Assembly (NCBI GenBank): GCA_905178155.1 | Contig: CAJINV010000010.1 | Location: 62,001-126,000 of the forward strand | Direction of reading: 5' to 3' | Origin: Amoebophrya sp. A120 | Lineage: Eukaryota; Protista; Dinoflagellata | Length of the DNA stretch: 64,000 nucleotides | Part shown: positions 9,001 through 58,300 of the stretch, piece by piece | Position numbering within the stretch: position 1 is the stretch's first letter | Layout: each line of letters begins with the position of its first letter | The notes under the pieces: generated by a model | Told to the model about the DNA's origin: nothing | What the model saw: only the letters and a program-made list of their open reading frames with translations | Databases searched by the model: none | Position numbers and translations under genes: made by a program

Positions 9001-12000
9001 CTCTAGCATCACAGATTCTGGGAGGGCTTCCTGATGGTCATGCCGCATGAGAAATGCCCGCTCCGCGTAGCAAAAACTGGACCACTTCTTTTGCTGTTCA
9101 TGCAACACAGAAGATTTTGTGTAGAGTCCCAAGGCAGCATCACAAATTTGCAACCCTCCAGACCGGGATAATATTTGCAATTCATAAGCTGCATATCGGC
9201 GCACATTTTGTTCATCATCATCTGCATGCGGTCGCCGTGGAAAGCGTTCAGCTCTGCTCTCAGCTATGAAATGCAGAAGTATGATTGTACTCGCATAAAT
9301 GCATTACAAACTTTCTCAGTATGACATAATGCGGATTTACCTTGAGAAAAAAATTGTAATGCATGATTGCAATTATTGCGAGTTGTACGATACGTTTGCA
9401 GTTCATATCACCCTTGCACGGTCGATCTCCATCGACCACTCCTTGAAAATTTTGTACTTCTGTGCGAGGCCCCTGTGAAGAGATGTTGAATCATTTTTCG
9501 AATTTTCGGCAATAATTTTCATCACGCATGACGAACATGTTTCTCGTATTTCTTCACTACGGTCGTAAAGGAATTTTTATTTTACGCATGCTGATTTCTG
9601 CATCTACTTCGAGTGCACAGCTTTGCAAGATGAAAAACGTCAGCAAAAACAAGTCCACTAGAGTCAATACAAATTTATAAGTACTTTCTCTTTTTCAGAT
9701 GGCTGACCCCGTTCATGGTCAGATTCGCTGCGTCCTTGGCCGCTCGCAATTGCGCCGACCACACTTTCGTAAACCGCCACATGTGGATATGAGAGTGCAC
9801 AACTCCCCCTCCACCTCAGTTACATGGCATCAATTGCAATACAAACACCAGCACACTTGGAGCCCGAGCATGACAAGATCCTGAGCCTACTGTAGTACTG
9901 TTTCAGGTTCCGAATTTGTCATGCAGACCGTGCCACATCGCAGCGATAGGATTTCGGATTTTGCATGACAAATGAGGCTGAGGGGGAGGAGGAGCTGTGC
10001 ACTCTCATATTGGAAAGCGTGCTTTAGGGAGACCGTGTGGTCCCACTTCGCCTGAAAATACTCCTTGTGCTATCAAACAAAAAACTGTTAACGTTTTCAC
10101 AATAAATGGCAGTCCTGCAGCATTGCAAATTTTGCCTTCCATGCATGCTACGCAATACAAATGTGGGTACCTTTTCTGATGCGTTACTGCATCACAAATT
10201 CCGTTAATGTTAACCCTTTTTCTTGTGATATGTGCTCCACGAACCGCGCCCGCATCTTCGTCCGGGTTCGCCAATAGACTCCCCACATCTTGAAGCAGAC
10301 CGCGGCGGTCTTCTTTGTTTTTTCGTACAGAACCTTTCGACACGCTTTCTCGGTATCCAAGGAAAAAACTGTGTTAGTGTAGGTCTTTTGGGAAAACAGC
10401 ATGACAAGTTTGTCTGCCATGAGCTGCATGACAGGAAAAACTTGTGATGCGCAGATAGGACTGGCAAACAGAAACACGTAGGAACAAGCGATCCTATCAT
10501 GCAACAGGTGGAGCATGACAAGCGTAAACTGTTTTGCATTTTCTGCATCACAACATCACTTACACAGTTTCTCTTTTCGATACTCGGCTCGTCGGTTGTA
10601 CTCCGTGAAGCTGACCACGCAGAACTTCTGCCAGATAATGAAGAAGTCCTCTTTGCATTGGGATACGTGGCATCAAATGCAAAAGTGTCTGGGTCTGAAA
10701 GAATGCAACCTGTGATGCTGAATTTTTTTTTTTTTTGCTAGGCAATTCGCACGCCGGTCGGTTTTCGCATTCTTTTTTTTGTTTTTTTTTCTATTTTCAT
10801 TTTTTTTTTCCTTTCCTTTTTTCCTTTTCTTTTCTTTTTTTTGTTTTTCTTCATTCCGACACAGCTGGCGCACAAAAAGCGGTGGGCGATTCACGAAGAA
10901 GTGCGCGGGTATGCTCGGCGTTCCCGAGGCCTTAGGCCGTACCTTTTTGACAAAATCCGGGCTGCGTCCTGGCTCGCGTCCTGGCTCCTGCATTGCCTCC
11001 GCCCTTCTCTTCCCTCGCAAACAGGCCGCGCCCATCTTCCGCGCCGCACGCGTGCATGTGCGCGGCTACGCCAGTTCGTTTTGTGCTTATGCTTTAGACT
11101 AAGACAAAGAACTTCGAAAAACGGTATGGACTACTTACCTAATACTTTGGTGCTGCGTAGTACTGCTATCGGAATCAGACTCTACACCTTATGACTTCAT
11201 TGCAACAATGTCACTGGCCGCAGCCTTAATCTTACCCAGCCAGCCACTGCTGAAAAAAAAAAGGAAGCACATCCCTGCAGTTTTGGAAAAAGGCGCAACG
11301 AGTGGGGGGGGACCACAGGAGTCACCCCCCCGCAAGCTGCGCACGCGTTGAAGTATCTGCTGCTTATTTCTACATGAGGCATTTGCTTCGTCACGTAGTG
11401 CTTCCAAAAAACGAACTGCTTTTACGAACCTGTGATGCTGAATTTGGATTCCAAAAAAATCTGTATTGCATGAGCAGCAAAGGGAGCGCAATGTTTGCTA
11501 CGCGGGGAGGGCATTTGTCATGCGGAATAGGCATCGAGAAGCCCTCAGAAAATCTGTGATGCTAGGGCATGCATCACAGACATCGCGGCTCATGCAAAAT
11601 GTGCATGACAAGTCTCAGAATCTTCCAGACCCAGACATTTTTGCATTTGATACGTGGGACTTTATCCTCTTCCGGATTTTCTTTTCGTTTATCACGATTT
11701 TTTTCCAGTACTTGAGGACGTTCGTATGCATCGCAAATATACCGGAGTTTCGATGAAAAATCCAAATGTCTGCCATGCGGTTTCTGCGCGAAGACCCAGA
11801 AGGTTTGCCATAATGCGAGCCCTAGCATCACAAATTTTTAGAAGCTTAGGTTTTGAATCCGCAATGCTCTGCATGACAGATAATTCCCTTTTACAAGAAG
11901 TGGGCAGCTTCTACTTTTGCTGTCCATGCGTGAGAGGTTTTATTTTTAGTATGATGTGATAGAGGCCGCGCATCAAACATTTGCGTAGTTCCAGACCCAG

Positions 12001-37392: not shown

Positions 37393-40300
37393 TTAGACCC
37401 ACACTTCCGTGCTGCCCGTGCCAGGGCTAGTAGCAGCCTCGCCGACAGAGTGGGTCTGCTCCCTCGGTGACGACGACGAGTCCACCTTTCGATAATTTTC
37501 TATCCAGGATGAAAAAACATCATCCACCCGCATCCATTTTTTGCATGACAAACAATGGATCTTATGCATGTTTTGCATGACAAATTGGATGGGGATGGGT
37601 GCCTTTATTTCCTGGATATCTTCATCCGTCGCAGAAGTAGAACTCGAGGACTTCGCCGTCGCCAAGCCCACCGCCTTCTTCCCGTAGTCGAATGTCACGT
37701 ATGCAATACAAATACTTCTCGCACATGTACAAAGTGCATGACAAATTTTCCCAACTTAGAAGAAGCAACTTCTTGTCACGCTGCGGATAGAGGTTTCAAG
37801 GAAAATTTTGAAATTCAGATGAAACCGCACATATTGTACGTGTCCGAGAAATTATTTCCTGCGGATATCACGTAGTACTTGCGCATGAACGTGTCGCCCA
37901 AAATCCACAGCGGGCCGCTCGGCACGTCGATGGGCAGAATTGCGAACAGGCACTGGCCCATCACCATGGGAATTTTCACATCGTTGCCGTCGAGTGTGAA
38001 ATCATGCCCGTTCAGGCTGAAATATGCATTGCAAATAAGTATGTCGTCCTCTCCTGCTGGGTCTGAATTTCAAACCCTACCTGCAATGCGAGTATCATCA
38101 GCAAGAGAAATAATTTTCAGAAAATACTCGCATAATTGCAGAGTGGCCGCTTTTGCTGCCAGCGTCAGAGATGAACAGCAGCAGAAGTCTGCTGAGCAGT
38201 CTTTTTGCTGATTCATTCGTATTAAAACGCATCACAAACTGCCACCAGGCATGACAAACAAAACTTCCCAGTTGTCGTCGTCGTGTTTATGCATTACAGA
38301 TCTTGTTGTCCTTGAGGTCTTGCATTACAAATTTGCAATGCATATGAAAGTGAAGGTCCCTATGGGAGCGTCAGGATCGAAATCGACAAAATCGAAAAAA
38401 AATTCTGGCTGTACTTGGCGGGGGCCTTCAGGGCACCCCCTCCGGGACCCGTTTCGATTCTGACACACTCAAGCATACCGTCGCGGCTAGCGGGAAAAGG
38501 TCCGAGTGTGTCAGAATCGAAATGCGAAATCCCGGCACCCCTCCAGGGGGCCCCTGGGTTTTTTTTCGATTTTGCGAATTTCGATCCTGACGCCTCCATA
38601 GTCCCAATGTCCTTGTCGCAAGGAATCAACATCTTCCCGAAGATATCCTCTGCGAAAGTATCGCACTGGTACAGTATAAATGCAAGTCTTGCATTACAAA
38701 TCTTGTTCCCAAAGCAAATCAGCATGACAAATTCCATTTCTCGTACTGAGCAATTTTGGAAAAATGCAATCCTTTGCTACTAGTAGTAGTGCGATATTAC
38801 TTTTGCAATTCATAAAAAATGTTCACCGCACCTACCTTGGACGCCAGGGCGTTGACCTGGAGTCAGCAGAAGTTTGGTCTTTACATTGCAGGGCCAAAGA
38901 TAAAGAAGCATCAAGTACTTAATTAATATTATATAAGACAAAGACGAAGCGGGGGCGGTCGCGGTCAAACGCGGGTCGGGTAAACGCGGAGGAGGCGGTC
39001 AAACGCGGGGCGCCCAAACGCGGCCGCGCCCCGGCAAAATCGCGGTCGTACCCCGGCAGAAGCGTGGTCGTGCCCGCAAAAAAACGCCGGGCGCCCACCC
39101 AAAACGCGGGGGCGGTCCCCAGAGGGGCGCCTCGCGGTCGCGCTAATCCCGCCGCAGTCGCGGTTTTGCAATCTTGGCCAAGGCCGGTCGAGGCGGGGGC
39201 GCGGCGCGTTTGGCCTCGATTTGGGGGGGCGCGGCCGCGATTTCGGCGGCGCGTTTGACCGCGATCGACCGCCAAGACAAGGGCGGAATCGCGGGGCGGT
39301 CGAAGGCGTCGCGCTTTTTCCCGGGGCGGTCGGGGGCGCCGCGGTCCACCGCGGTGCGGTTAAAGGCGCCGCAGCCCACCGCGGTGCGGCCAAAGGCGCC
39401 GCGGTCCATCGATCCCGGTGCGGCCAAAGGCGCCGCGGTCCATCCCGGCGCGGCCAAAGGCGCCGCGGTCCGCCCCGGTGCGGCCACCGGCGCGCGCCGC
39501 GGCCCGGCCCGGCGCGCCACGGACGGTCAAAGGCGCCCCGGCCAGACAAGGGGTCGCCTTTTGCGGTGCGGCCGAAAGCGGCGCGCGCGCCCCCCCCCGG
39601 GGCGGCCGGGCGGAGGCGCCCCGGCGATGTATGCGCGGGCGGGACCACCGCCATCCGCCGCCCGAAAAGGTGGCGGAGCCAAGTAAACACACATGGCCGC
39701 GCGGCCCCGCGGAAGGCTGACGCGCAAAACATGCGTCCCGCTTCCTCCTCTGCTGCCGCCCCCTGCGCGCGCTTTTATTTTTCTAGCCCCGCCGGGGGCG
39801 CGCACTTTCTTTCGCCCGTCCCGCATTGCCGCGGCCGGCGCATTCCTCTGCCCGGCCTCTGCCCCCTGCTTTCTAACAACCTTTCCTCCACTGGCACCGC
39901 CCCTGCTCCCTTTCTCTCCACTATTCCTCCACTATTCCTCCAATTTCCTCCTGCCCCCTGCTTTCCTCCACTTTCCTCCACTGCCCGCCGAGTCTGGGCC
40001 CCCCTCACCCTCCCCTCACCCTCCCCTCACCCTCCCTCCCCTCCCCTCACCCCCCCCTCACCCACCTTGGACGCTAGGGCGTTGACCTAAAGTCAGCAGT
40101 AGTTTGGTCTTTCAATTGCAGCAGGGCCGAAGAAGAAGTATCAAGTACTTAAGAAAGCGCAGATTGAAAGTGTCAGTTTCTATATTGAAAGAAAAAACTG
40201 TGTTAGTGTAGGTATTTCAAAAAGTGCGATATTTTTTAATAGCGAAAGCTCAAGATTTTTTTCAAAGCAGGTAAGTCCGGTTTTCTTAATGCTGCCTCTG

Positions 40301-43300
40301 CTGTGGTGCTTGGAATGCAAGTAGCTAACGGTTGCTTCGGTAATAATTGTCTTTAGCTAGTTAAGGAGGCAGGACTCATGTTTCTGCTTCGAAACCCGCC
40401 GGACATCGTCGCAGTACTCCTTCAAGTCGGTACCTGGCCCCACCTCATAACAAAAAGCCCTAAATTCGCAGTAGTTGTAGCCTCGTAGCATAAGACCAGG
40501 CTGCTTGCGTGAGACACTGCGTCAGAGCGGCGGCTTTGTAGCATATCCGCGTAGAAGCCAGGCAAGGATCAGCACAGTAGTCCTTAGATAGCGCCTACAC
40601 AAGCTCGACAGGTAGGGCCTTCTGCGATGGCATGATCTCACTCAGAACAGGGATCTTCTTTAGCAGCGAGCAGCGTGGTTCCCAAATTCGAGCCGTTCAG
40701 ACAATTGCTGCGCATGACAAATCCTGCATTGACTGACAACCTTAGTCCATTTCTACCATGTAGAGCCCTCTTTGCACTGCTTCCAAAATCAAATCCAGGG
40801 ATTAACTTCTTCGCGCGATTTATCGCGCCCTGCTCTTTGCTTTTCTAGCATTACAGATTTCATCCTACGACTGCGCTATTTTTTCTTATTACTGCTTAAG
40901 ACTAGACTTAGCCACCTTCTGCACGCGAACCTTCTGACTTTGGTCTTTGTTTCCCGTACCTTTATCAAAATACACCACCACAAAGACACCTCCTTGGCCA
41001 TGCTTAGCCCGCGCGAGGTTTTTGCTCGTGTGGTAAGCATCGCGCTGGGTGCTTTGTGGGGGCTTTTTCGCCCAATAACACGTCCTCCGACCCTCCTCAC
41101 CGAAAGCAGCAACGCGATGTCGCGAGCCAACGTAATCCATGCGGCGAAGCTGTCCGGCGATTATTCCGCCTTAAACGCTTCCGAAAAGAAAAAAGAAGCG
41201 GCCCGCCTCTGGAAGGCGATGAAGGCCTTGGGTTTGTGCTATCATGCGCCCAAAGATTTGCACCTGATGATGGACGACATCCAGGAGCAGATCGACGAAC
41301 AGGAAAAACGGCCGGAAGAACAGATTTCCGGCCAGGTGTTTTCGGGGGAGCGCTACAAAAAGTATTTGCTTTTGTGCCCGTTTTTGCATCGGCTGCTGCT
41401 TGGCATTTTCTGGCCCCAGCGACAGTGCCTCCGGGGGTGTCATGCAGATAGGAACTTGCATGGTCCGAAGGTGTATGGTTGTCCTAAAGATAAAGGGGCA
41501 TGGAAAGCAAAGACCGCAGTTTTTTAGCCCAACAGCTGGCCTCGATGCGCTTGTGACTCTTCTACTACTTCTTCCCACAGAAAAAAACTACTTCACCATG
41601 CCAATGCTGAGAATTTTTCACAACAGCGGGTGGCTGGACATTGACCTCAAGTACCACCAGAAGTGGATTGCTTTGCTTTTCGGATACGACACGCAGGATA
41701 TTGAGCGCGTGTTTGTCTCAGCGTCGCAGGCAGTGGCGATTTACAAACTCATGGGCGTGAAGGGATCCCATGTATTCTCTATAATTTGTAATGCGCGCAA
41801 GCCTACATATCTTTTTTCATCTTCTGCTGCACCTGAGCACCCTAAAGACGAATCCCGATCATCTCTTCCTCTCCGGTCGTAACCAACTAAAAACAACTTC
41901 ACACAGCCGCCCAAAGGTGCGGAAAGGGCCCCCAACGAAAGAACGGCAGTTGCGGAACTGCAGAAATGGAAAACGGAGAACCAGAAAGGTTTCAAGAAGG
42001 CGCAGGTCGCCGTGACGAAGGCGGTCAAGAGCGCCTTCCAGCCCGACTCGTCCAGTGATTCCGATGACGACAGCGACAAACAGTCCGCCCTCGGCTCCGG
42101 AACTGACGACCAGACGACCGATGAGGACGACAACCTGCGCAAGCGCGGCCGCAATAAGAATCGGGGGAAGAAGGACGACAAGAAGTCGACCAAATCTATC
42201 AAGGTATAGTCTAGCTGTGTTCCTATTTTTGCAATAGTCCCTGATCTGCCGGTCATCGAGAGCTTGCCCTGTCTATCTCGTTGGTTTCGAAAGCCATCTT
42301 GTCTGAAATCCACAAGTAACATCTTCCCCAGGACCGCCAGCCCGTGTTGGCGATCAAAGATGCCCCGCGCAAGTCCAAGCGCCGCGACCCGTCTTCGGAA
42401 AAAAAAACCCGCCGTTCCCGCAGTACCCGCCGGAACAAGGAGAAGAAGCGTCAGCGCAAGGGTATGAAGTGCAAACTTTTGTCACTAGTGGCAATCTGTC
42501 ATGCGGAATTGGCATCAAACCTAGCACGAAAGGCAAGAAATCCGCATTACAGATTGGGGCACTAGTGAAAAAGTTTGCCTTGCATAGCCGAGTCGTCGTC
42601 GTCTGAATCCGAGGCCCCTGCCTCCCGCAGCCGCAAAACGAAGACTACTTCCAAGTCCTCCAAAGAACCGATTGGAAAACAGTCCGCGTCTTCCCGCCTC
42701 GAGAAAAAGAACGTCGTCTCGGGCAAGAAGAGCACCAAAAAATCTTCGGGCAAGAAGCTGACTTTGCATGTGAAGTCGAAGAAGGACAAGACCCGGAAGC
42801 AGTTGTTCAAGAGTAGCAAGGATGTTTTCTCCGACTCCGATGCGGAGGAAGAAGCTGATGCCGACGACCTGGACGCCCTCCGCTCGGAAGATGAGCGTGA
42901 CCCCTTGAGCGACGAGCTGGATTCCATGATGAACAGCAGCGACGAGGACTTTGTGGACGACGAGGATGCGTCGGAGGAAAGCAGCTCCGAGCAGTATTCG
43001 GAGGGCGAATTAAAGCGGCTGGAGAAAATCAAAAAGAAGAAGGAGCAGCAGACGTTGGAATCCCGCTCGAACAAGAACGACAAGAAACCGGCCAAAGAGG
43101 ATAAGAGCAGCAAAGGCAAGAATGGCAAGGACAAGGGGTCGCCGGATCACAAGAAGCCGGAGGTGAAGATTAACGCTCCGGGTACGGATGACCGCCCGAA
43201 ACCTAAATCCCGCGTGGTTAACCGCAACAAGTTGCAGGAGGAACTGGAACAGGAGGCCAAGAACAAGAAAAAGGATGCGGGGAAGGCGGGCAAGGGTGAA

Positions 43301-46300
43301 CCGAAGGAAAAAACACCGGGTGGGAAGAATGGAGACAAGCAGAAGCCGACTGGTTCGATTCTGGATACCCCCAGCACCCCGGCCAAGAACAAGTCGCCCA
43401 AGGAGAAGCTTGGCTCGGCCCACAAGTCCTCCGGAAAAGAGTCTTCTTCTGCGCTGCAGACCCCCCCTGCCTCGGGAAGCAAGGCGAAGAAGAAGGCCGG
43501 AAAGAATGGCGACACCCCGCCGTCCAGCAGCAGCAAGAATACCAGCTCCACCCCGGTTGGCGATTCTTCCAACGCTCCCTCTTCGCGGGCTACGCCGAGT
43601 AGCGGTTCGAAGAGTAGCCCTGCCGCCGGCAGCAGTGGCAAGAACACCGGTAAGGGGACGGAGTAAATTGGCAGCCACCTGTCGTGCGATTCGGAGGAAG
43701 GTTTTTCTATGATGTTGGCCCTCATCATAGGTGGTCCGGGACGTGTTTTTGGCAAGAATATGCATCACAAATTCTCTTCTATAGATGGAAACTGCAGAAA
43801 GATTGTATCTCACTAGATATTTTAAGGCGTAGATCTCCCACGGGATGCTCTACCAACTTCACAAGCAGCTGGCTTTGCTTCGTATTTCTACTTGGTGAAC
43901 TAGACAACTCTCCTAGATGTTTAGAAATCGCGATGACCTAATATGTTTTGAAAGGAAAAGCGCATGGATTGCGCTTCTGGTTCTCGAGAAGAACTCATAT
44001 CCAAAGTGGTTGTATACCGGCTAAGTGTTGTGAGCTGTTTCACAACTTCAAAGCCCACGAGGCGAGCTTTTTACTTTTGACGATTTGGAATAGCTGGAGC
44101 ATGGCGTAGCATGCGCGCGCACCCCGTCCCGCAACGCCAAAAAGAGCGGGCGGCGGTGATAGACTAATATCGCGCGCTAGAGCTATTGTGTCCCCTGATC
44201 TATTTCGCCAAGCATGGCACGGGTGCCAGAAGTTCTCTTCGGCCAATGCGGCACTGCGACCTCCTGTCGAGAACTTGTATCAAACCAGATCAGCAGCGTG
44301 TAGATAGCAAGAAACGCCGCCCCGCGCTGCAGATGACAAGCGTGGGCGGAGGCTGGGGCTCTGCAGATGTACTATTTTTCAGCTTCGGGGGGCCAAGATT
44401 TCCAAGGATGTATCCACTCACCCCGAGGCGCCGCCGCATTACAAATACTCTTCCACTTGCTCTGCCCTATCGCAGGACAGGCCTTGAAGCTGACGCACTT
44501 CATCTAGTTGGGCACTTCTTTTTCCCTTGGAACCGCAGCGACACACTTGTGCTAGTATCAACCCTTCAGAGTTGGAATCTGGCAGACAGACAGGACCTTT
44601 TCACTACACTTCGCCAGCAGTATAATTATCCACAGCGGGAGGCTGTTGCATTTCTTGACTTCCGTATTTTTTGAACGCGCATCTTTACCGACTACGACTT
44701 ACGCTAATTCTTCTGCATATTTACCGAGGTTTTTTATTTTCTCTTCGATTCTTTTGTTTCTGCATTACAAACTACGAGCTTTTGCATGTTCAACACCTGT
44801 GAGAATGGTTTTAGCCAGCTTAAAACACGTCCAGAGCGGCACCCTCGCCCTGGTGAGGATGTTGCCGGAGACACAGCGCGGCAACTGGGCGAGGAAGAAG
44901 AGCACCCGTACGAAAATTGTCTGTGTTGCGATTTTATGTTGTTTTCTAGTCACCCCCGATCACGCATGACAAATTCCAAAAAGAGACACAAAACAACTGG
45001 AATCGCAACGACGTTCAGGTGGCATATTGTTACGGAAATCCTGGCGGGATTGGAGGCGCGACATGGCCCTTGCGTACCCGCTTCCGGGCGCCTTGGACTT
45101 GGACAAGGGCGAGACGCGCGAGGATTTCGGGACAGAAATGGTACTCATGACGAGCATAAAACTGCCTGCGTTTTAGGTTCTTTAGACACTGACCCTCGTA
45201 TCTATGACCCTAGATGATGAAATCTGTAATGCTCAGGCTGTTCAAGAAAGTTCTGATCATGTTCTGGCGCAAAAGCGGGCGCCACCAGGTCCGGCTTTTG
45301 CACATGTTTCGAAAATGTCAACTCAGGTTTTGTTTCTCGACTGGATGGAGGTACGCGGGTACGAGCAGCAGGTCCAGAGTTATTGCACTTCCGTGAGAGT
45401 GGACCACTCGCAGCTGGCGGACGACAGCGGGCGGCTGTTGTTGGCCTCCGCATTGGAAAAGCACTACTGTCAGGAGGAGCTCAGCAAACGCCACCAATTG
45501 GTAAAGATTTTCACACATCAAGCAGTCTGTGTTGCGTGAGGTGGTAGCTGTGATTCCAGTTTTCCAATTAGAATGCGCCTGCTCGTATTGTCTTCGTCTT
45601 TGGTCCCATAGTTCCCTCCTGGGCTCTTGGTCCTCGGCCAGGGTGCTTTCAAATAATGTTTCGAAACTCCGAAAAACGGAACAACGTCCTGCGCGGAGTC
45701 ATTGACGCCGTTATCTGGATCCGGAACCTCCTCGGGGGCACCTCGGTCTCGTTTCCGGCTGAGTACGAAGACCTGCAGGACATGCAGTGGAACAGAACAA
45801 TCTGTATTGCGCAAGACAAATCCACCAAGGGCCTGGAGTCGAAGAACGGGATCCAGGTACGCAGTACATTTGTAATGCATGACACAAGATTTCTGATGCA
45901 AGCGCGTATATTTGTCATGCGTGGGATCGCCTTTCAAACAAAAATCCACTCTCGCAGGTCTATCTCACGTTCCTGGTGATGAGTACATACGAGTTTGTGA
46001 CCCAGCTTTGGACCATGCCGCTTCAGCGTCCATCCGGCGTCATCGGGAGAGGAGGACGGCCCCGACCCCGCGCTGCGGCCCAAGCGATGGCAACCGATAC
46101 GCTCAACGTTTTGCATTTTCTCGGCGGCAATCAATTGATAAACAAACTCCGAGGACCATTCACGACCGGCTGGCGAGTTACTTGCGTGCTAGCAGGGGAC
46201 CAGGAAGAGAGTATGACGAGAAGTTCGCACGCCCTGGCAATGGTGTTAAATTGTATACCAACAATCGGGCTCCACCATCGTCTTGCAAATGTCGTCAATA

Positions 46301-49300
46301 AGCTCTACGCCGCCTTGTCGCGGGTAAGAGAGGCGATCAGGATCCTGCTCGGCGGGCAATGGTCCCGCCAAAGTTTGCGCGGTTCGTACGAAGACGCGCG
46401 CTTGCGGTTGGTGGAGCGTGCGGAGAAGCATGGTTTCCGCTCCGAAGCGGTCGAAACGCAAGCCGGGATGTCGACTCTTGAAGCCCTGCAGACCTGTATA
46501 TTAATAATTTTTGAATTTGTCATGCAGAAAATCATTTTTGTGATGTTCATCCCCCTCTCCCCTCCGGCCCTGAGCAGCCTCTCGCGTTACTTTTTTGCAG
46601 GCCAGGTTCTTGCTCCCGCTGCTGGGTGAATGAGGCGGATGCTTTCTTTAGAGGGAAGAACCGCCTTCGTCTGTTCCCAGCAGCGGGAAGTCGAACTGCG
46701 TGGCCTTTTCTGTAGGCCGAAGTCCTGGCTTCCGCTGGGGATTGGCGAAAAAAGCGATGTTGTCCTAGGGAGATCATCGCTTTTTCAATTTTGTCGAGCG
46801 GGAACTGGAACTCTCGGCTTTTTCGAAAGCCGAAAGTTCCAGCTCCCGCTCGACAAAATTGAAAAAACAACTCGGGCAGGGAAAAGAGAATAGTGAGAGT
46901 GTAGGTCACATCCAGGAAAAGGGAAGTTGACGAGTGTAGCAGAGAAAATCTTCTCCGGGGGGGGGTCAAAAGGACCTCCAGAAATTGCATTACACTCGAT
47001 CAATTCTCTTTCCCAAGATGGCCATTTACACTGATTCTTATTTCTTTTTATAGGTGGGGATTAGGAAAAAGAAAATCGCGAGTGTAGCAATTTCATTCTC
47101 GCGCTGGGGGGGTGGTTGGGGGGGGTCGAAAAAGCACCTTGATTTCAACGCGATCTCGAGAATTGGTTTTGCACTTACACTCACGAAAATATCTTTTTCG
47201 CCTTCAACTTTCCGGACTTTTGTCTTCATAAAATGAAAACGCAACAATACCTTCCGACCAGGTGCCCGCCTCGATTCGATGGTCGAAGCGCGATGGTTCG
47301 CGGAGATGCGAATCGCGTTGCTCCTGTTGAAATCCAGCCAGGCGATCCCCCTGGTTCTCTACGAGATGTTAAGTGGAAACAGTCCGCTGCGTCTTTCGCT
47401 GGGCCCGGGTGAAGAAGGTGATCCCGCCGTGACCGAAATGGGCGACCCGGTGGATTATTGGGACCTGGCGCCGCGGCAGGTGGAAGTAGTGGAAGAGGGG
47501 CCGGTGCTTGGGTTCGATACTAATCTCTTGGCCGGTGATCTTGCTGCCATCGAAGAAGCCGAGGTGGCTTTTGAGGCGGCCCGCGAAGAGCGAGAGGAGG
47601 AAGTTCTCTTTCGACCGGGAGTTGACGATGTGGATGTCGATGGAAACAATGCTGATCTTGCTCCGCCCGACGTGCCCCTACTGCCGGTTGAGGAACTTTT
47701 CGGGGACGGAGAGCTCGACTCTATCTTCGACGAAGAGCCAGATGCCGCCGCTGAGCCTGCTCCTGCTCCGGTGCCGGGTGATCCTGCTGACAATGACAAC
47801 GCAGTATGAAAATGAAAACAGAACGCCTGCGAATGGCTTCGAGATGTTTTTGCATTCAAGACCATTTGACGCATTTGAATTTCGCATGACAGATTCTGAA
47901 CTCATTCGCAGGCGCACTTTTTTCATTTTCATATCGCGCTCCGAACGTCCGGGGGCGGGGACAAAACCAACGGATGACGGATAGGCAGAAGGTGATGGAC
48001 CTCATCCATGCAATCGAGGCCTGCGACATCGACCGCGTGAACCACACCCGGAACCTCTCCAGCCGCTACTACAAGCTACATCAACTTCATTTAGAGGTGA
48101 CGGCGGGTGCTCTGCAGGAGCCGCGAAAGCGTGAAGCCTTAAAGCAGAAATACCAGGACGTCTTCCCGTCATTGGACCTCGAAGGGAGCCACCAGCAGTT
48201 CCTCCAGTCCTGTGAGCGAGCTTTGCCGTCGATCTGCCTGGAAGCAGCCCGGGATGCCGCGCGACAAATCCACAACATCGACGAAGTGCAGGCCTCGTTC
48301 ACGCAAATAATCTACAGCATGCGGCATTGGATGTACATGGTCTTCTATCGTGTGCAGAAATCTCAGAGCTCCATGTTTGTCATGCAAGAATACCTCCGCA
48401 GCATCGTAGATTCGAAGGTCCGTGGGAAATCGGTTGTGTGTTTCTGCATGCAAACAACTTTTGGTGTGGTTGTGCATGACAAACATGGAACTCTGAGAAT
48501 TGTTCCTCCTGATAGCCGTGACCCCGCGTACAATCTTTGGTTTACTCTCGGGCACCGTCCCGACGAATGCCAGGCCTGGCTCCGGAACAACCTCGTCAAG
48601 TATGACGCCCTCGACCCCACGAACCGCGACGGCTTATTCCGCCGGAAACTTCCCGTCTTTGCTAATTGGATTCAGAACCTGCTCCGGTCGGACGAGCAGC
48701 TGGCGAAGGACGTTCTTGACAACATCCCGGTGGCGGGAAGTACGTCCGACTTCGAGCAGGAAAATCATTGGAGATATGTGACGCTGGCACAAAGGATTTT
48801 TCGCAAACTCCAGGGGCGGTTCCTTCTTTCGGCGGCACGGGATCGGTGGAGGAATAAGATGAAGCTTTTCAACCCGTTCCCCAGCCTGTGGGGCAGCACC
48901 GCCCGGAATGCTACCATTGCGCCGTCGAAGCTGCGTCCTTTCCTAAACGACCCGCAGCAGGAGGTTACCGCGGAGACGGTCCGCGCCCATGTTTCCGAAG
49001 TCGCCGCGAAAAACGAGCAGACGCCAGTACAAATCTTCGCACAGGTGGAAGACATTCGGTCCTCCCACCAGCTTCCTGCAGACATGGCGGCAATTCGTGA
49101 CGAGGTCCGACACGAGGCTCTCTCGGCCGAGATTCAGGTTGCAGGGACCAACTACTACAGCCACAGCCTCCAGGTGGCGCCATACATGGAGGCGTCGAAG
49201 GTGGAGGCGGTTGCGGACATCCCGATTCTCCAGGAGGTTGGCGACAGAGTAGGCTGTGAAACATGGGGCTGCGCTCGGGCAACGTTTGTAATGCGGTGGC

Positions 49301-52300
49301 ACAAAACCAAAGCCGTTCCTCCTCGTTCCAAAATGCCCTTCGCAACCTGTGTTTCACCTTTCCATACGTTGTCGACTCGTGTTACCGCTTCAGACATTGG
49401 GCTGCAGATAAAAAGCCGCTGGGTATGCAATGAATTCATGCACCACCAAGCCCTTCCTTTTTTAGAATGCATCAAATACGCATGACAGATTTCGCTTCAA
49501 GTCTCTGCAAAAGCAAGAAGGTGGGCTTGGTGGCAGGACGATCGCCTTTCATATGTGTTGCGGTTGACGAGGAGGCCGTCGGGTTTCGGTGGATACTGGT
49601 GTTGCAGATTTTGCTATGCTGGGAATAGTAAGTCTTGCAAGGTCATGCACACGGCAATCTAAACCCGTACCTCCGGAACGTCCGGGGGCCCCGGTAATGT
49701 TTGCATGTGTCATGCGAGTGGTTAGTCCTACATTTTACAGATGAGACGCAGAATGGTTTTCAGTATTCCAGATTTCGTTGGGCAGATGCCGCGCAACTGA
49801 ATCAAGGCCATTGCCGCCGCATAAAAGCGCAGCAAGACGCTCTATTCACCTGCATACTCGCAGGGACTTTTCTACGGTCTGCTGCTGTCGCCGAAGGAGC
49901 CCTACGTGTACATGTTGAACCCGGCGAATTTTACCCCCGTGTGTGGTCTCACTGCCCATCTTGCTGTAATGGTCTTATGTAGAAAAACCTTCCGACCCTA
50001 CAGATGTTTGCGATTCTGGTACTTTGTGATGCAATTTTCCCGGAAGTGATGTCGTGCAGACATGTTGCAACCAGCATCACAAACCCCGCGGTCGTTTTTC
50101 TTCACTTGGATAAACCAACTACCGAATCCAGTTCGACAATGGGAGGCTGTGCGTCCACTTCTTGAATACGGATTTCATTTTGTTCAGGGAGGCGATGACC
50201 CGGGCGATCGGACACATCCCCAGCCACCTCTTGAAAGAAATAATCCGGATGCTCACCGGCCTTGAAATTCTTTCGGACCCGCCGCTATGAATGTGAACGA
50301 TGAGCGCCACCGCGGCAAGGTTACAAAGCGGCCGGAAGGGCAGTGGTCAGAAGTGCTGCTGCTCTTGTGGTTTTTTGCCGACCCGTGGCTGTGCTCTGCT
50401 TCTTCATCTTCATACTGTGCTGCCGACTTGCGCGAAATCTTCCAGGCGATGGCAGACGACAACATCGAGCTGGACAGCGCGGCTGAAATAATCAGGAGCA
50501 AGCTCACCTCCAACGTGCTCGAATTGGGCGCGATCGATGACGAGCCGGCTCGGAGGCGACGCAGAGGTGATGCCGGGAATGCTGCTGGGCAGGGCGGCGC
50601 CGGGCAGGACGGAGCGGAGCGTGCGGGGAGACGGGAGTTGGGGAGGGTGCGGAACAAAAGTCAACTTGCTCTGACGTGTCCGGCCTGCGAGCAAGATGTT
50701 TGTTTTGTTCGCCGAAGTATCCGCAGAACCGGCGGTAGCGGGTCCATGCTACGGCGTGTCTGGCCACCGGGAACGGTTTTTGAGAACATGAGGAAGCCAC
50801 AGATGAGCACCTTCATCGGGGCCCGGAACGACGACCGCCAGGTGATTGCCTCGGTGTTCAAAGCCGGCGCATTGGAGAAGCACCAGCAGTCGTGCTTGCT
50901 GTGTCTCGACCTTGACATTGTTGAGCGGGAGATGGGGACCAAGCTCGGCGCCGTCCTGGAAATGGCCGAGAACTTGCAGGAGGGCGAGCAGGTTGTGGCT
51001 GAGGCTGGTGACGACTTGATGGGATGGCTGAGATTGTTTTCGTACTTCGTAGAGGCTCCGATATATATTCAGAGCCAGACATTGCCAGTTTTGATCTTAT
51101 ACAAACATGGAAACTACCGACCCTTTTTGGTTCGTTCTGCCAAGATACCGCTATAAAAACGCTGATAAATAGACTTACTGCTGGACGTAGACGCACTTTT
51201 ACACCGGTTTCAGAAACAGTATCTTCTTCCTACACAGCAAGCCATGTCTGCGAGCTGTTCTTGCAGCCGTTGGCATTTCCGCTCATGCTGTCCTTTTATT
51301 CGAGATTCTCCTTTGATTTCGTACTGCCATTGTGCGCCAGCCACAGTGTGGAAGCAGGCGTGGAAGGTAGCGCCTTGATTCCCTAGAGGTTTGTATCTTA
51401 GCTCGTCTTCCGGTAAGAATTCACACCACAGCAAAACGCACTGCATTTATTCCGAGGGGTTGTGAGAAGTCGACGTCTGCATTTTGGAAGGAAGAGCTTT
51501 GCTAGAAAAGCATGGGGCGCATGCTTCTGGGAAGTTGTCTTGCTTGAGCTGGTTTTTTGTCGTGAAAAGCTGTGAAGGAGGCGTATTTCAAAAACGGCCC
51601 GAAGAACCTCGCTCTGTGGTCCCGCCCGTTATTGCAACTGGAAAAAAGGGTGGGCCCGGGGTGCTGCTGCTGATATGTGTCCCGTCGTCCGTGTCTTCTT
51701 TGATACTCAATCTCCCTGGTCCTCACCTCCCGGCCCTGTGGAAAACCATTCGAAACCTGCGCAAGATTTCCAACCCCGATCCTTCCTGCATTTGCTGCAG
51801 AGGCCCGCCGGAAGGTGTGGTTGCTTCAGGTCCCATAGACTAAATTGCCGACGCTACGTCGTTAACTTCCTCGACCTTCTTCAACATCCGCAAGAGCTTG
51901 ATGGGATCACACATGTCTGCTGCGCTCAGATAGAATTCATCCGTCCAATCCGGACAGGCCGCAGGCACGAAGTCCAGGACTTCCGGATAAAGAGCGATCG
52001 TTCCAACCCATGGCGACCTGCATTGCCGTTAGTTTTTTCATGTATTTGCAGCACTCGGCCTCGATATGTTATCTATGCACTGCGGTAATGTCCACTCTTC
52101 ATTCCATCAGCTCACAGCGGATAATCTTGAACAAAAAAAAGCACTTCCACATAGGGGCTTGAAGCATGCAGCACCTTGAATCGCACTCGGCGCAAGTATT
52201 TGCGCCCGAGATGCAAGAAACAGTGTCTAATGATGGCCATAATACGACGGATCCGCCGGGTTTGGTGCGTAGCCATGCTCCACCAGCGACCGGACCGGCA

Positions 52301-55300
52301 AGAAGAACGACCCGGCGTGGGTTTGCTCCGGGCCCGCCGATTTCCGTGCGTGAAGGAGGAGGACATCGAGGACACTGGCATCGAATCCTTCGCCGTTTTT
52401 CCTGGTTGAAAAAGGTATTTGTGGTGGTCTGTTTTGGTCAATAGAGAGCTGAGACACAGCGGCGCCATTGGTTGAGCCCGCAGCGAAGACACGCACTGTT
52501 GCTTACGAAAGTAAAGGCTCTCTTTTTCAATTGAAAATGTCGCGCACCCTAGAAAAAAGCGAGCTACCTTTGCGTGCTTGCACGAATTCCCGTCACTTGC
52601 CCGTGATGGTTCTTCTTGAATTTGGCCGCTCGCTCTTGGCAGCGTAGCTTCAGGCCCTCAAAATGTAAGCAGCCGCCCACCACGGTAAAGCCAGTGCTGT
52701 TCAGGTCATAGGCGCCACCTGCCAGGCTTACGCCCTGCGCCATTTGTTGCCTCATACACTGCTCCACGCGCTGGTTGCGCGATGAGGCGTTCAAGTGCCC
52801 CAAGGCGCCGGCAAGGTGCACACCGAAGGCAGGCCATTGGCCACGTAGGCGCTGCGCTAGCGCATTTGGTGCGCACCACCAATGCTTTGCCCGAAAGTCC
52901 ACTTTTTCCCAGTCATAGTACTTGAAAACCGGGACAAAGAGCACCAGGCGGCGGTGGGTCGTTATGCCAACGACTACGCTGCCGGCGTACTCGACGCGCT
53001 TTTTCAGAACCTGGCACTTTACATTGCGCAGCCAGTCCTCGACGGCACTTTTTGAGCCCTTGACCTGCAGTCGCAGGACCGTGGGCGCCGCAGCCCCGCC
53101 GCTCGATGAGCTCCCCTGTGAGCCGTCGCTCACGTCGCCGTGGGCTTTGTCAGCTATGACCAGGTCTGCGAGGTATTCAGGGGCGCTGATGATCTTGAAA
53201 TCGGGGTCCAGTAAGCTCGTCAGCTTTTTTGCCGACCACTCTTCAGTGCCTCGTGGACTTGAGCCCATTGGCAGCGATCTTTTGCCGAGGCAGGGTGGCC
53301 GAAGGGGCTGCAAGCTGAGTCCGTTTTCTTTGAGGTTCTCGCTAAACAGGCTGCTGACAGACGACTGCAGCCGCGGCCAGCGCGAGAAAGCGGTGTATTT
53401 AGTGGGTTTTGGCGCTGTTCTAGGTGGGGTAGTTTAGGGAAAAGGGAGTCCTGTCAAGAGTCTGTCCCTCTAGCATTGAGAAAAGCCTTCGAGTATTTGA
53501 AAACGAGTCGTCGCATGTAAATTTCTGCTGTCTCAGCTCTAAACCCGATCAAAACAGGCCCTGCAATGCCTTGCCCAAGAGCACAACCGAAGACGCAAGA
53601 CGGAGGCGCAACCGACCTGATCGAGACCTTCGGCCAGAGTCCCGTGCTGTTACGAGGTGGGGCCAGAATGCTTCTGCGCCAGAAATCAAGCTCCACGACC
53701 TTCAGTCAGCCGTCGCCACCGATGAGTCCTGCCTCCTTAACTATTCACATATACCGAAGCAACCGTAGCTAGTTTTGACTATATAAATTCACCATATAAA
53801 CATCAACACATACCAGGTCGGGGATTGCGCCGGAGCTTGAGAATTTTTGAGTTTTGCATATCAAAAAAAATAGTGATTTTTGAAACACCTACACTAACAC
53901 AGTTTTTTCTTTCAATATTCTATCTTGTTGTCATGATGCAATTATACCTCATCAAGTTCAAGTGCCGCAGCCGCTGCTGCTCCTCGTGCCGGAGCAGTAG
54001 AAACAATACGAATGATCACACAACAACTTAAAAAAAGCCCTGCTGTACCACGTCCGTCGGCCCAGCAAGCACGGAATATCCTGTGCAAAAGTATCGCACT
54101 TGTGGTAATTTCAAACATGCGCTTACAAATCTTTTTCTGAAGGAAAATCTGCATATGCAAATTTCATTTCTCATGCTAAGGAAATTTGTCATGCGATATA
54201 TACTAGTACGATGCTTTTGCATTTCATACGGAAGTCCCACTGTCGATAATCGCAGCCTGGTTTTTCGCGATCACATCTCCCCCAACAGACATGCTTGTCA
54301 TCAAAACCTGCCAGTAACCTTCTCGCGTCACGGGCACGTACGTCATATCCCCCGTGTAGTGCTTCGGATCGGCACCGCCAATAACGAGCTCTCCGTCCGC
54401 GCCGGACTCGGTTCCGAGGAAAAACGAAAAAGCCGGCTGGTCGATGAGTTTCTGATCAATGTATCAAGTGCAAAAATGTCTGGGTCTGGAAGAGTGGAAG
54501 CTTGTCAGGCTTGTCTGACATCACCCTCAGGTCTGTCATGCACATTACCCAAAAGCGGCCCTACTTTTCTGTCAAGCAGAAGCTCACTTTGTCATGCAGA
54601 AAAGCCAAGACTATCGCACCTCCAAAACTTGTCACGCTTGCCAGTCAATTGAGGCGTCCTCGTCTTTCTCAACCAGCATCACAAGTTTCCAGACTCAGAC
54701 ATTTTTGCATTTGATACAATGAGCGACTGGACGACCGTGGGGATCCCGTCGACGGAAATAGTGCTCCAGCCCAGGCTATTGTGAGGAAAAATCGAAATCC
54801 CCTCTCCCCATATCGAGAAGGAAATTTGTGATGCTGATTTGTGACCACTGACCAGCTCTGTCTTGCATATGGGGCAAATGGAAGCCGTTTGGCGCATTCC
54901 ACAGCCAATCTGTGATGCGCTTTTGCGTACTGCAAAAGTGTCTGCCATGCCTAACTGCTAGCCTGTTGCATACCCAAAAATCAGGCTTAGGATGTGCCTC
55001 CAAGGAGCGCCTTCGGCAATACAACGGTGATTTGTGTACAGAAATCCACCAACATCAGAAATTTCCTTTTTCCTATGGGGTGGGAGCATTTTTCATTGTA
55101 ATACAGGCCGAGGATCCCGTCGAACTTTCCAGCGGCGTAGGCCATGCCGAGACCTGAAATATTTTTTTGGAAAATTTGAGTGACAACATCTTCGTCCTCC
55201 GCGGAACTCCTTGGGCTGGATTGCCAAAGCTGACTCACATAGCTGTTCCTGGGGTCTCTGGCCACCTTCCGGCCTACTTTGGGCCAGCTTTCCGGTGGGT

Positions 55301-58300
55301 TGCTGTTGCATTAACGGCGGTGGCCGCTTGTAACACCTGTCGCCGAGCAGGGCGCCACGGGGCTTGGCCAATCTGCCTAACTGGGCGGTGTTGTGGCGCT
55401 CTTGGTTGCTTTAAGAGGGGCCACCCTTTCCAGAATTTTTCTAGAAGAGAAAGTTAGCCAAAAGTTAGCCAAAAGTTAGCCAGAGGGCAAAAAAAAAAAT
55501 CCCCAAAAACGTTAGCCAAAGAAGGAAAGCAAAAAACGCTGATTTTTGCTTTTCGGCAAAGGGCGATGCTATGGCCAACCTTTGGCCAACTTTTGGCTAA
55601 CTTTTGTTCTAGAAAGTCGGACTGCGCCATGTTGAAACCGCATCTGCGGTCGGGAGGTGGTCGGAGCTTGTCTTGTCGCCGTGCAGATGAGGCAGAGGTT
55701 GCGGAAAAACTGCTGCTGAGAGATGTTCGACGAGAACGCTGCTGGGGTGGTCGCTGTAGACTGGGTAGGCAATCGCGGTGAAGATCTGGACGAATCACCG
55801 TAATGTCCTTGGGACAGGCAGACCGCTGCTGGTGAGAGCGGAACCAGCGTCACAGATCTTGCCCCAGTCGTAAAGCGCGTGGGGTTCGAGCGCTATATTT
55901 TGTAGCACTCTCAGCAACTCACTCTCAGCAACTCTGAGGACTCTCAACACTTCGAGTGAGAAGAACATCTTCGTCCTCCGCGGAACTTCTTGTGCACGAC
56001 TCACTGCTGGCGCTGCTGCACCGAGGCAGAGTATCTGCTCTTCAACCACACAAGTCTAATAGTAATACCTGACACATCCGTGATTTCCGCAAAAACATAC
56101 TTTTCCAGCTTCACGTTCCCACTGTTGCCCAAGTGCAACGTGTCCTGGCCCAGAAATCCATCTACTGGCTATCAAAATGAAAAATCCCCCCTCCCCCTAT
56201 CAAAACGGCGATCTGTTATGAGGGATTTGTGTACACAAATCGCATTGGTCTTGCAGGAAAGCACTGCACGCAGGAGATCGGAAGCCTAACGGGGGGGGGC
56301 TTTTGGTGTAGGGGCCTAGCATGGTAGACGTCTGCCCTGTAGGCCTTGCAGCATTACAAACCGCCTACAGATCGCGGCGGAGTCTTTTGATTTGCCTTCT
56401 GGCAAGACAGGATTTGTGGTCCTGGTCACAAATCTGCATCACAAATTTTCGGAAGGACATGTTTTCAATATGGGAAGGGGGGATTTTTCCTTGCAATACT
56501 GGTCCGGAGCCGTACTGGATGTGGAACTTCGTTATGAAACACAAATTTGAATTTCCCGCACATGCACAAAATGCATGACAAAAATAAATCTCCCTAGCTT
56601 GGAGTGTCAACAAACTACGTGTCATGCTAACTAAGATTGAAGGCAAGTTTTGTCATGCCGAAACAGCAGGTTACGGAAAATTTTCTGAGGATACTCGTGC
56701 CGTTTTTCACGTAGCTTTCCGATTTCGCTTCGTTGAACAAGGATTTTGCCTGACGCGAATGCAACAAAAAAACTGTGTGAGTGTAACTTTCTGCTGTTCT
56801 TGCAGACGATAGTACAATCCAGTTTTTACACTTGTCATGCTGGTCATGCATCAGAAGCTCGTATCTTATTGTTAGTTTTAACATCCTAGCTACGCATGAC
56901 AGGTTTTTTTTGTGACGCAGAGCAAATTTGTGATGCTGTTCCTGCTCCATCAAAGTTACAACTACACTCACATCACACCACAACTTTTTCTCTTGGATAA
57001 CACGCGAAGGCCGTGCATTCCGAACTGGGGACCCACAGGTTGCTTGACCCTATGAAAGCCGCAGGTTAGAAATCCTCAAAGTGGAAATAGCTTGTGATGC
57101 AAAAAAACGACTCCAGTTGAAGCGCCATTTGTAGTCGGCGCATGAGAAATTTCCCGGGCACTCAAAGCGTGTCTGTCATGCTACTTAGGCAAAGGGGTGT
57201 CCTTCTGTCGTGCTAATCAGCAGCCCTATTCTTCACCCCTAGCAGGACAATAGTCGGCCTCCATTGTGTCCTCTGCAATGCAGTCTCTTTGCCTGGGATT
57301 TCATGCATCGCAAATTATTTCCACTTTGAGGATTTCCATTCTGAGGCTTTCATAGACCCGGTATCGTAGATGACTTGGAATTCGGTCGGTGGGCTGCCCA
57401 CAGCGATATCACAGGAAAAAACTGTTTCACTGTGATGATTTTCTTGCAAGATCTGCAACATGACAAGTTTGTTATTGTTACACATGACACTGAAAATCTG
57501 TCATGCGCGCATTTCCCATAGGGGAAACCACGGTTGAAACTCCAATGTTCTATGCAGGTGTAGCAAAACAAGTAGCTCTGTGTTCCATTTTCTGCCTGAC
57601 AAGTTCACAGTGAAACAGTTTTTTCTTGCGATAAGCGACGGCGCCGAAGTACTGCGCGTTACCAAAGTCGTGAATCGTAATGTCGGCCGTGTCTTGCAGC
57701 GAAGATTTTTCTGTTTTTGCGGAGGGATTTTGGATCTCCTTGATCAACTTTTCCCGCCAAAGCTTGTCATTGGCCGACTGCTGCTTGCGGAGCGGAAACC
57801 TGAGAACAGTTTCTAGAATGTTCGTAGTTGAGTTGTATCCACTCTTCATCTCCTGCAGTTCGTTTTTTTACTATCTGAAGCTGTTGTTCTTGGGTATGCT
57901 GAAGTGGAAATAGTTCATCTCATGATTCTGTTTGTTGGCAAATAAACTACGAATTAAAATAAGTACTTGAGCAGCTTGGGTCCACCTCCTTTTCGGTGTC
58001 CCATGAAGGCGGCCGCACCTCCACCCGTGCTGCTCCCGACCGCATTTATTCGCCCGCTAGGATCTATGGAAGCGTCAGGATCAAAATCGTCAAAGTTGAC
58101 ATAGTTTGCGATGCATAAAATGCAACCCACAAAGTGCCTGCCTTGCAGAGTACGCAAGGGAAGCAGATTGTAAGCCTGTTGAGGGGTAGAAATAGAGCTG
58201 CTAAAGTAAGCGTCTTCCATACCCAAACACCATTACAAACTGGATGTAGGCACCGCCGAGATTTGTCATGCGCCACTTGAGCACTGGGCTCCAACTGGCA

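Follow-up and report, generated by a model that had tools for sequence, protein, structure and literature searches.

Long terminal-inverted-repeat elements with three conserved genes as candidate mobiliser of TAT...ATA introners in Amoebophrya sp. A120

The 64,000-nucleotide stretch of Amoebophrya sp. A120 analysed here (contig CAJINV010000010.1, positions 62,001 to 126,000; in the following, the window) contains a 13,735-bp element which is bounded by terminal inverted repeats (TIRs) and carries three genes, A, B and C. It belongs to a family of long elements that is probably the best candidate for the mobiliser of the main TAT...ATA introner families of this genome, a role which is well supported but circumstantial. 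The existence of an autonomous-type TIR transposon family is very likely, and this family has probably not been reported before. A first-pass annotation had proposed that the element, or its family, supplies the transposase which spreads the introners. Of this proposal, further long copies, short families with matching TIRs, one exact intron and a predicted nuclease fold in gene C speak in favour, whereas gene B has not advanced beyond the status of a candidate transposase.

The ends of the element are as first described, i.e., TAT...ATA termini, 41-bp TIRs and a perfect 5-bp target-site duplication (TSD; Table 1), with the sole mismatch between the TIR arms at position 32 (A/G). The termini TATTGAAAG (left) and CTTTCAATA (right) have TTCTA on either side, the junctions reading ...gtcagTTTCTA/TATTGAAAGAAAAAACTGTGTTAGTGTAGGT... 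on the left and ...ACCTACACTAACACAGTTTTTTCTTTCAATA/TTCTAtcttg on the right. Inverted similarity of the element ends comprises 77 nt at 83 % and reaches about 270 bp inward of the TIR, with a perfect 22-nt subterminal inverted repeat at 40358-40379 / 53722-53743. In all four closely studied long elements, the motif CTGGCCCCACCTCRTAAC is found in inverted orientation at either end, ~250 bp inward, while the surrounding DNA has diverged; it may represent a binding site for a protein or a promoter element. The element is apparently located between two convergent genes (end of an open reading frame (ORF) at 40090; protease gene on the - strand from ~54.0 kb). At the DNA level, its interior is mostly single-copy, aside from the ends and a piece at element positions 6647-7065, and DNA contigs over 44799-50798 display an even depth of 42-43, rising only at a repeat at ~46.6-47.2 kb. 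An 86-bp near-perfect palindrome is located at 46781-46866, between two coding blocks of gene B; units related to it form tandem arrays at C4:1.388 Mb, C1:12.54 Mb, C1:5.414 Mb and C10:1.254 Mb.

Paralogous loci were found by protein-level searches with the three ORFs of the element in the A120 genome (115,520,608 bases), to which all genome-wide searches and counts given here refer. At least five long elements are complete, including the copy in the window. Their lengths range from 11.4 to 14.3 kb, the TIR variant differs from element to element, and each is flanked by a perfect 5-bp TSD (5/5), for which the chance probability is ~(1/1024)^5. The search for other long copies with 5-bp TSDs and homologues of the gene at 44.8-51 kb, as suggested in the first-pass annotation, thus yielded four complete copies and one truncated copy at a different site. 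The loci on C14, C15, C13 and C35 are collinear with the window element and share 37-55 % amino acid identity with it. The TIRs of the C14, C15, C13 and C12 elements are ~29 to 54 bp long and perfect or near-perfect. The four closely studied elements have the terminal TATYGAARGAAAAAA in common, followed by a lineage-specific stretch.

Mobility of the elements is demonstrated by the perfect TSDs and by the presence of one lineage in two copies at separate sites. In these two copies (C35 and C15), homology begins precisely at the TIR tip and the adjoining genomic sequences are unrelated, so that they reflect transposition and not segmental duplication. Between lineages, synonymous sites are saturated and the ratio of non-synonymous to synonymous substitution rates (dN/dS) amounts to 0.15-0.5; the lineages are therefore old, and their proteins have been kept by selection. 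Accordingly, the three genes are under purifying selection across lineages, and the family consists of several old lineages with one or two copies each. Two groups of additional loci were observed. At C5:6813801-6843800, a homologue of gene C lies within inverted repeats ~11.4 kb apart; similarity between the two sides runs >200 bp further outward, so that ends and TSD are undefined, and a gene B homologue was not detected at this locus. The most conserved exon of gene B has weak and partial matches in its C-terminal half (E 1e-5 to 1e-11) at C13:279381, C20:985971, C2:570756 and C1:14429257, which may represent further diverged elements or domesticated copies.

The TIRs of the long elements are matched by large numbers of short elements. 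Genome-wide, the window-type TIR core AAAAACTGTGTNAGTGTA has 1863 matches (control, 1), the C14-type core 1308 (control, 0), the C15-type core 129 (control, 2) and the C13-type core 236 (control, 1). Many of these matches form facing pairs ~170-190 bp apart, bounding elements of ~209 bp, and the TIR core of each long lineage matches its own family of such miniature inverted-repeat transposable elements (MITEs). Twenty sampled pairs bound elements of 206-223 bp with TAT...ATA ends; their TSDs, which lack a target consensus, are perfect 5-bp repeats in 13 cases and match at 4 or more of the 5 positions in 19. Within the window, the 23-mer GAAAAAACTGTGTTAGTGTAGGT occurs at exactly three sites, i.e., at both ends of the long element and in the introner at 10354-10582, where none would be expected by chance; the sharing of this 23-mer, pointed out in the first-pass annotation, is thereby corroborated.

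A second short element of the window, at 57407-57633, carries the C14-type TIR core and is located in a gene for a pepsin-like protease. Deletion of this element plus one TSD copy restores the sequence ...NAQYFGAVAVGSPPTEFQVIYDTGS... of the protease; the element is thus an exact intron of this gene. It shows the features by which introners are recognized: a genic position, terminal inverted repeats, a 3-5-nt direct repeat and exact removal from the coding sequence. The protease gene itself (54000-58300, - strand; pepsin-like aspartic protease with DTGS and DSGT motifs) is apparently interrupted by numerous short introners which belong to several TIR types.

The motif GCAT[GCT]ACA[AG]A is present in 137 copies in the window versus ~1 expected. 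Twenty copies lie within the long element (40712 to 50083), in line with the about 20 given in the first-pass annotation, but they do not constitute a separate feature of it, since they reside in gaps between conserved coding blocks, i.e., in probable introns. Typically, the motif forms inverted pairs near both ends of probable introns (e.g., 48376-48385 / 48474-48483), and it is likewise present in the repeats which terminate the long inverted structure of C5. It might serve as a binding repeat for the transposase or as a signal in unusual splicing.

Besides the MITEs, direct derivatives of the window element were found. Its exact TIR recurs genome-wide as pairs 525 bp and ~895 bp apart. The 525-bp copy consists of element positions 1-263 joined to 13476-13735 (98-99 % identity), and six ~895-bp copies consist of the left ~250 bp, the inverted piece 6647-7065 and the right ~194 bp of the element. 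In the seven derivatives read, 5-bp TSDs are perfect or near-perfect and varied in sequence. The deletion junction of the 525-bp derivative coincides with the subterminal motif CTGGCCCCACCTCRTAAC. A simple internal deletion does not explain the inverted intronic piece of the ~895-bp copies.

The three encoded genes noted in the first-pass annotation correspond to three collinear coding units which are conserved across the paralogous elements. Exons were searched singly, and annotated homologues from Amoebophrya A25 and AT5.2 were used for whole-protein work. Gene A has conserved N-terminal blocks and a long, low-complexity tail rich in K, S, E and D (ORF 42575-43666); it shares 35-63 % identity with the C14, C15, C13 and C35 versions, and a Pfam scan of it gave no match. 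It may encode a DNA- or chromatin-binding accessory protein.

Gene B, the candidate transposase, is intron-rich and its product comprises ~1,150-1,280 amino acids, as estimated from the annotated A25 and AT5.2 homologues (1,154-1,279 amino acids). Invariant motifs are QxDxS(T)KG, DxDQE..R, G(I/L)HHRLxN, DPxxxLW, (S/T)xDxExExxW and a C-terminal CxxC...H...CxxC. Their arrangement, with QxDxS, DxDQE ~100 residues on, HHRLxN ~25 residues further, a long helical region and then (S/T)xDxExE, would be compatible with a split RNase H-like core. The largest exon contains an in-frame TAT...ATA introner (residues 125-182 of the 503-residue ORF), which is without counterpart in the C14, C15, C13 and C35 copies. 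A search of 1.84 billion proteins gave 14 matches to gene B; the named ones belong to Amoebophrya A25 or AT5.2 and the remainder to short metagenome/Logan contigs, so that the gene appears confined to Amoebophrya and a few marine metagenome contigs. An insect protein among the 14 is of low complexity and was taken as spurious.

Gene C is convergent with gene B and is predicted to encode a PD-(D/E)xK nuclease of a QxK variant, in which Q replaces the usual D/E. This assignment is based on invariant residues, a structural model and the structures matched by it. Across 8 diverged homologues, E9, E31, D35, Q68 and K70 are invariant. The AlphaFold model of the first exon (52567-53268; predicted local distance difference test (pLDDT) 79, predicted template modelling score (pTM) 0.71) contains the core fold alpha-beta-beta-beta-alpha-beta. 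E9, D35 and K70 map to helix 1 of the model and to the two core strands that follow (on or next to them), i.e., to the structural elements which bear the catalytic residues in the PD-(D/E)xK fold. The top Foldseek matches in the PDB are Hjc resolvases (E ~0.009, prob 0.98), VIA-align gives Z 9.6 to I-Ssp6803I (2ost) and 9.3 to Hjc (1gef), and nearly all 50 matches listed by VIA-align are PD-(D/E)xK-type nucleases. The N-terminal 148 residues superpose on Hjc and I-Ssp6803I over 105-115 residues with Z 9.3-9.6 and a root-mean-square deviation of ~3 A. In contrast to these two enzymes, gene C has Q for E in ExK and an extra C-terminal beta-rich domain, identity being 13-17 %. Over its whole length, the best matches are not Hjc or I-Ssp6803I but uncharacterised giant-virus proteins: the fold of nuclease plus C-terminal domain resembles proteins of an Aureococcus anophagefferens virus, Klosneuvirus and Hyperionvirus (Foldseek E 3e-6 to 3e-4), a model-based similarity which hints at a link to mobile DNA of giant viruses.

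Table 1 Features of the window element, of short elements in the window and of further long elements in the genome (positions refer to the window)
Feature	Position	Strand	Details
Long TIR element	40183-53917		13,735 bp; TAT...ATA ends
TSD, left copy (TTCTA)	40178..40182	.	= 53918-53922
TSD, right copy (TTCTA)	53918..53922	.	= 40178-40182
Left TIR	40183..40223	+	TATTGAAAGAAAAAACTGTGTTAGTGTAGGT(A)TTTCAAAAA; 40/41 match to right arm
Right TIR	53877..53917	-	40/41 match to left arm
Subterminal motif, left	40434..40451	+	CTGGCCCCACCTCATAAC; ~250 bp from element end
Subterminal motif, right copy	53649..53666	-	CTGGCCCCACCTCGTAAC; inverted relative to left copy
Gene A	41117..43666	+	Conserved N-terminal blocks 41093-41374, 41610-41822, 41883-42206
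Gene B	44799..51156	+	At least 11 conserved blocks, intron-rich
Gene B blocks	44799-44909, 45015-45143, 45279-45515, 45602-45859, 45928-46512, 47261-47608	+	
Gene B blocks (continued)	47920-49251, 49371-49421, 49843-49980, 50114-50284, 50407-51099	+	
Segment between two gene B coding blocks, probably intron	46829..47247	.	Inverted middle part of ~895-bp derivatives, 84-88 % identity
Introner in largest exon of gene B	48346..48519	+	174 bp, TAT...ATA, in-frame
Gene C	51846..53268	-	Convergent with gene B; first exon 53268-52567, 234 amino acids
Gene C, further conserved blocks	~52412-52233; 52028-51846	-	
Short element (introner)	10354..10582	.	229 bp; TSD CTCGG; TIR with 23-mer of long element
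Short element	57407..57633	.	227 bp; TSD AGCGA; C14-type TIR core; intron of - strand pepsin-like protease gene
C14 long element			12,791 bp; TSD AATGA; own TIRs, collinear genes
C15 long element			14,268 bp; TSD AATAC; own TIRs, collinear genes
C13 long element			~13.7 kb; TSD GATTC; own TIRs, collinear genes
C12 long element, more distant			11,441 bp; TSD AACCG; homologues of gene C and gene B exons, 20-26 % amino acid identity
C35 copy			Truncated; 98.7 % identical to C15 over 9.8 kb

We infer that genes B and C provide transposition enzymes, that the family mobilises the MITEs and that it is active at present. Each element combines TIRs starting with TA (TATYGAARGAAAAAA... in four lineages), ~270 bp of structured, inverted subterminal sequence and genes A-C. 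The product of gene B, possibly together with the nuclease of gene C, would bind the lineage-specific part of the TIR, excise the element and insert it elsewhere via a 5-bp staggered cut. Thousands of ~209-bp MITEs, which have only the 20-30-bp TIR in common with the long elements, would be served in trans by the same proteins. If such a MITE landed in an exon, the transcript would lose the element plus one TSD copy, and the insertion would thereby become a non-canonical intron, i.e., an introner.

Several points weigh against the long elements as mobiliser of the introners. The short MITEs have the TIR alone in common with them, and mobilisation in trans is for this reason only an indirect conclusion. 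Each lineage is present at only one or two copies, and genes A-C were delimited by conservation across paralogous elements, not by transcripts. Three RNA runs had 0 reads on 44799-50798; they probably stem from another strain and hence provide no test. Pfam scans, first of 10 large ORFs and thereafter of all 103 stop-to-stop ORFs of at least 70 residues, revealed no recognisable transposase domain, and the same holds for Pfam, NCBIfam and PDB profile searches with gene B homologues taken in full length from A25 and AT5.2. PDB profile searches with four exon alignments and the full-length alignment gave no match. Word-indexed protein searches with the 503-residue ORF and with the gene C alignment returned the query only, within the reach set by their length window and word index. 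The AlphaFold model for gene B (full-length homologue, 5 sequences) is unusable at pLDDT 32.8. The sole pointer to a transposase is a hAT resemblance in the ESM Atlas at scores of 0.75-0.79, under the tool's reliability of 0.9; the largest exon of gene B on its own retrieved unnamed bacterial clusters only. As to the transposase fold named in the first-pass annotation as a check on its proposal, a PD-(D/E)xK nuclease fold is thus predicted for gene C, whereas gene B contributes neither a Pfam, NCBIfam or PDB match nor a usable model.

Given the absence of a transposase domain from genes A-C, the long elements might be non-autonomous and carry cargo, i.e., MITE-like ends with captured host genes in the manner of Pack-MULEs or transduplicates, the transposase being encoded elsewhere. 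The genes are intron-rich like host genes, with a common introner motif between coding blocks, and the low copy number per lineage would fit as well. However, the same three genes, with order and orientation preserved, recur in no fewer than five lineages with saturated synonymous sites, co-diverged TIRs and perfect TSDs. Shared gene order and co-diverged TIRs make repeated capture, or long retention of passengers under purifying selection, unlikely. Furthermore, homologues of gene B surfaced only inside such elements or as the weak partial matches described above, one of the three genes is a predicted nuclease, and no other transposase has been reported in A120 (PMC7789003). We therefore consider an origin as cargo improbable. 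Another explanation, raised in the first-pass annotation itself, would be that two introner ends face each other by chance or that the assembly is wrong; with thousands of similar TIRs in the genome, facing ends 13.7 kb apart are conceivable. This is contradicted by the perfect TSD and the inverted similarity ~270 bp past the TIR, by four further complete long elements of the same architecture and gene content, and by the 525-bp derivative, which unites exactly these two ends. DNA depth over 44799-50798 is even, the repeat excepted, and the assembly is Nanopore-scaffolded (PMC7789003). For practical purposes, TSD, paralogous elements, 525-bp derivative and depth refute a chance pairing or misassembly, the likelihood of which is negligible.

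The family could also represent a deep branch of a known superfamily, if gene B encoded a hAT-type DDE transposase too diverged to be recognised from its sequence, in which a large helical insertion divides the RNase H-like core. Of the ten best named ESM Atlas clusters retrieved with the A25 homologue, nine represent hAT transposases, and the termini TATYG come near to the hAT pattern YARNG. The order of the gene B motifs (QxDxS, DxDQE, HHRLxN, helical region, (S/T)xDxExE) resembles the layout D...D...CxxH...insertion...E of Hermes and Ac. Thus, TA-initial short TIRs, a possible D-D-E spacing with a large helical insertion and a weak language-model resemblance are shared with hAT elements (Ac, hobo, Hermes). 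On the other hand, the Atlas scores lie under the stated reliability, and neither PF05699 nor a BED finger was found in the ORFs of the window or in the A25 and AT5.2 homologues. Genome-wide, no PF05699 match reaches the family cut-off, and the gene B profile matches no solved hAT-type transposase in the PDB. Unlike hAT elements, the present ones are without hATC domain, BED finger and sequence or profile match, and contain an extra nuclease gene and an accessory gene; to our knowledge, hAT elements carry no PD-(D/E)xK nuclease gene. Moreover, the TSD is 5 bp throughout, whereas that of hAT elements is usually 8 bp, with 5-6 bp in a minority of subgroups. Taken together, a hAT affiliation of gene B appears unlikely.

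With respect to copy structure, the family of long elements and its presumed MITEs resemble pairs of autonomous element and MITE among class II TIR transposons, such as the Ping/Pong-mPing and Mariner-Stowaway systems: few long coding copies coexist with hundreds to thousands of short, non-coding copies that have only TIR and TSD length in common with them, and direct internal-deletion derivatives are found, here the 525-bp and ~895-bp copies. In contrast to those systems, the Amoebophrya proteins match no known transposase superfamily, three genes are present, one of them for a predicted PD-(D/E)xK nuclease, the elements are unusually long, at 11-14 kb, and intron-rich, and the MITEs serve as non-canonical introns. 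A nuclease of this type encoded beside a larger protein, as well as the 5-bp TSD, is reminiscent of TnsA/TnsB of the bacterial Tn7. In TnsA, the corresponding residues are reportedly E63/D114/Q130/K132, Q occupying the position of the second acidic residue as it does in gene C. Tn7 differs in that the present elements are eukaryotic, have symmetrical TIRs and introns in their genes, and lack target-selector genes. ORFs of at least 70 residues contained neither an rve (TnsB-type) nor an AAA+ (TnsC-type) domain, and no TnsA structure was among the Foldseek and VIA-align matches listed for gene C. The likeness to Tn7 may hence be regarded as a resemblance in working principle only.

The short elements agree with the Amoebophrya introners described earlier (PMC7789003) in having terminal inverted repeats, 3-5-nt direct repeats and non-canonical splice sites and in occurring many per gene; the difference is that a coding partner family is identified here through matched TIRs. 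In that study (Farhat 2021), no transposase was found in A120, and transposase-mediated spread of introners was argued against. A later mobiliser search (Gozashti 2022, PMC9860276) covered only 10 kb downstream of the 5' match and compared ORFs by BLASTP with known transposases; 11-14-kb elements with novel proteins would be missed under these settings. According to Gozashti 2025 (PMC12130899), the TIR introners of A120 are diverse, and the strain contains another TIR element, 'family 38', with Copia/Gypsy-like ORFs, which the present elements lack. As noted in a study of 2025, autonomous introners are still the missing piece in dinoflagellates. In agreement with the first-pass annotation, a matching mobiliser was not encountered in the literature searched, outside of which lay Dataset S2 of PMC12130899 (other A120 TIR introners).

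Among the explanations for bursts of intron gain, introners take the first place. Almost every introner known is non-autonomous, however, and lacks an identified mobiliser, a gap which is clearest in dinoflagellates. A coding family with lineage-matched TIRs provides concrete proteins and DNA ends, by which the spread of non-canonical introns becomes experimentally testable. The family may add a new type of transposase and, with it, a eukaryotic transposon that encodes a PD-(D/E)xK nuclease of its own. One may tentatively speculate, while regarding it as rather doubtful at present, that it constitutes a new superfamily of eukaryotic cut-and-paste transposons, in which a ~1,200-residue protein, with relatives detected solely in Amoebophrya and related marine alveolates, and a dedicated PD-(D/E)xK nuclease would form a two-nuclease arrangement like TnsA/TnsB, which likewise produces 5-bp TSDs, and the MITEs of which would have yielded thousands of non-canonical Amoebophrya introns. 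If true, this would overturn the published view that introners of Amoebophrya are spread by means other than a transposase.

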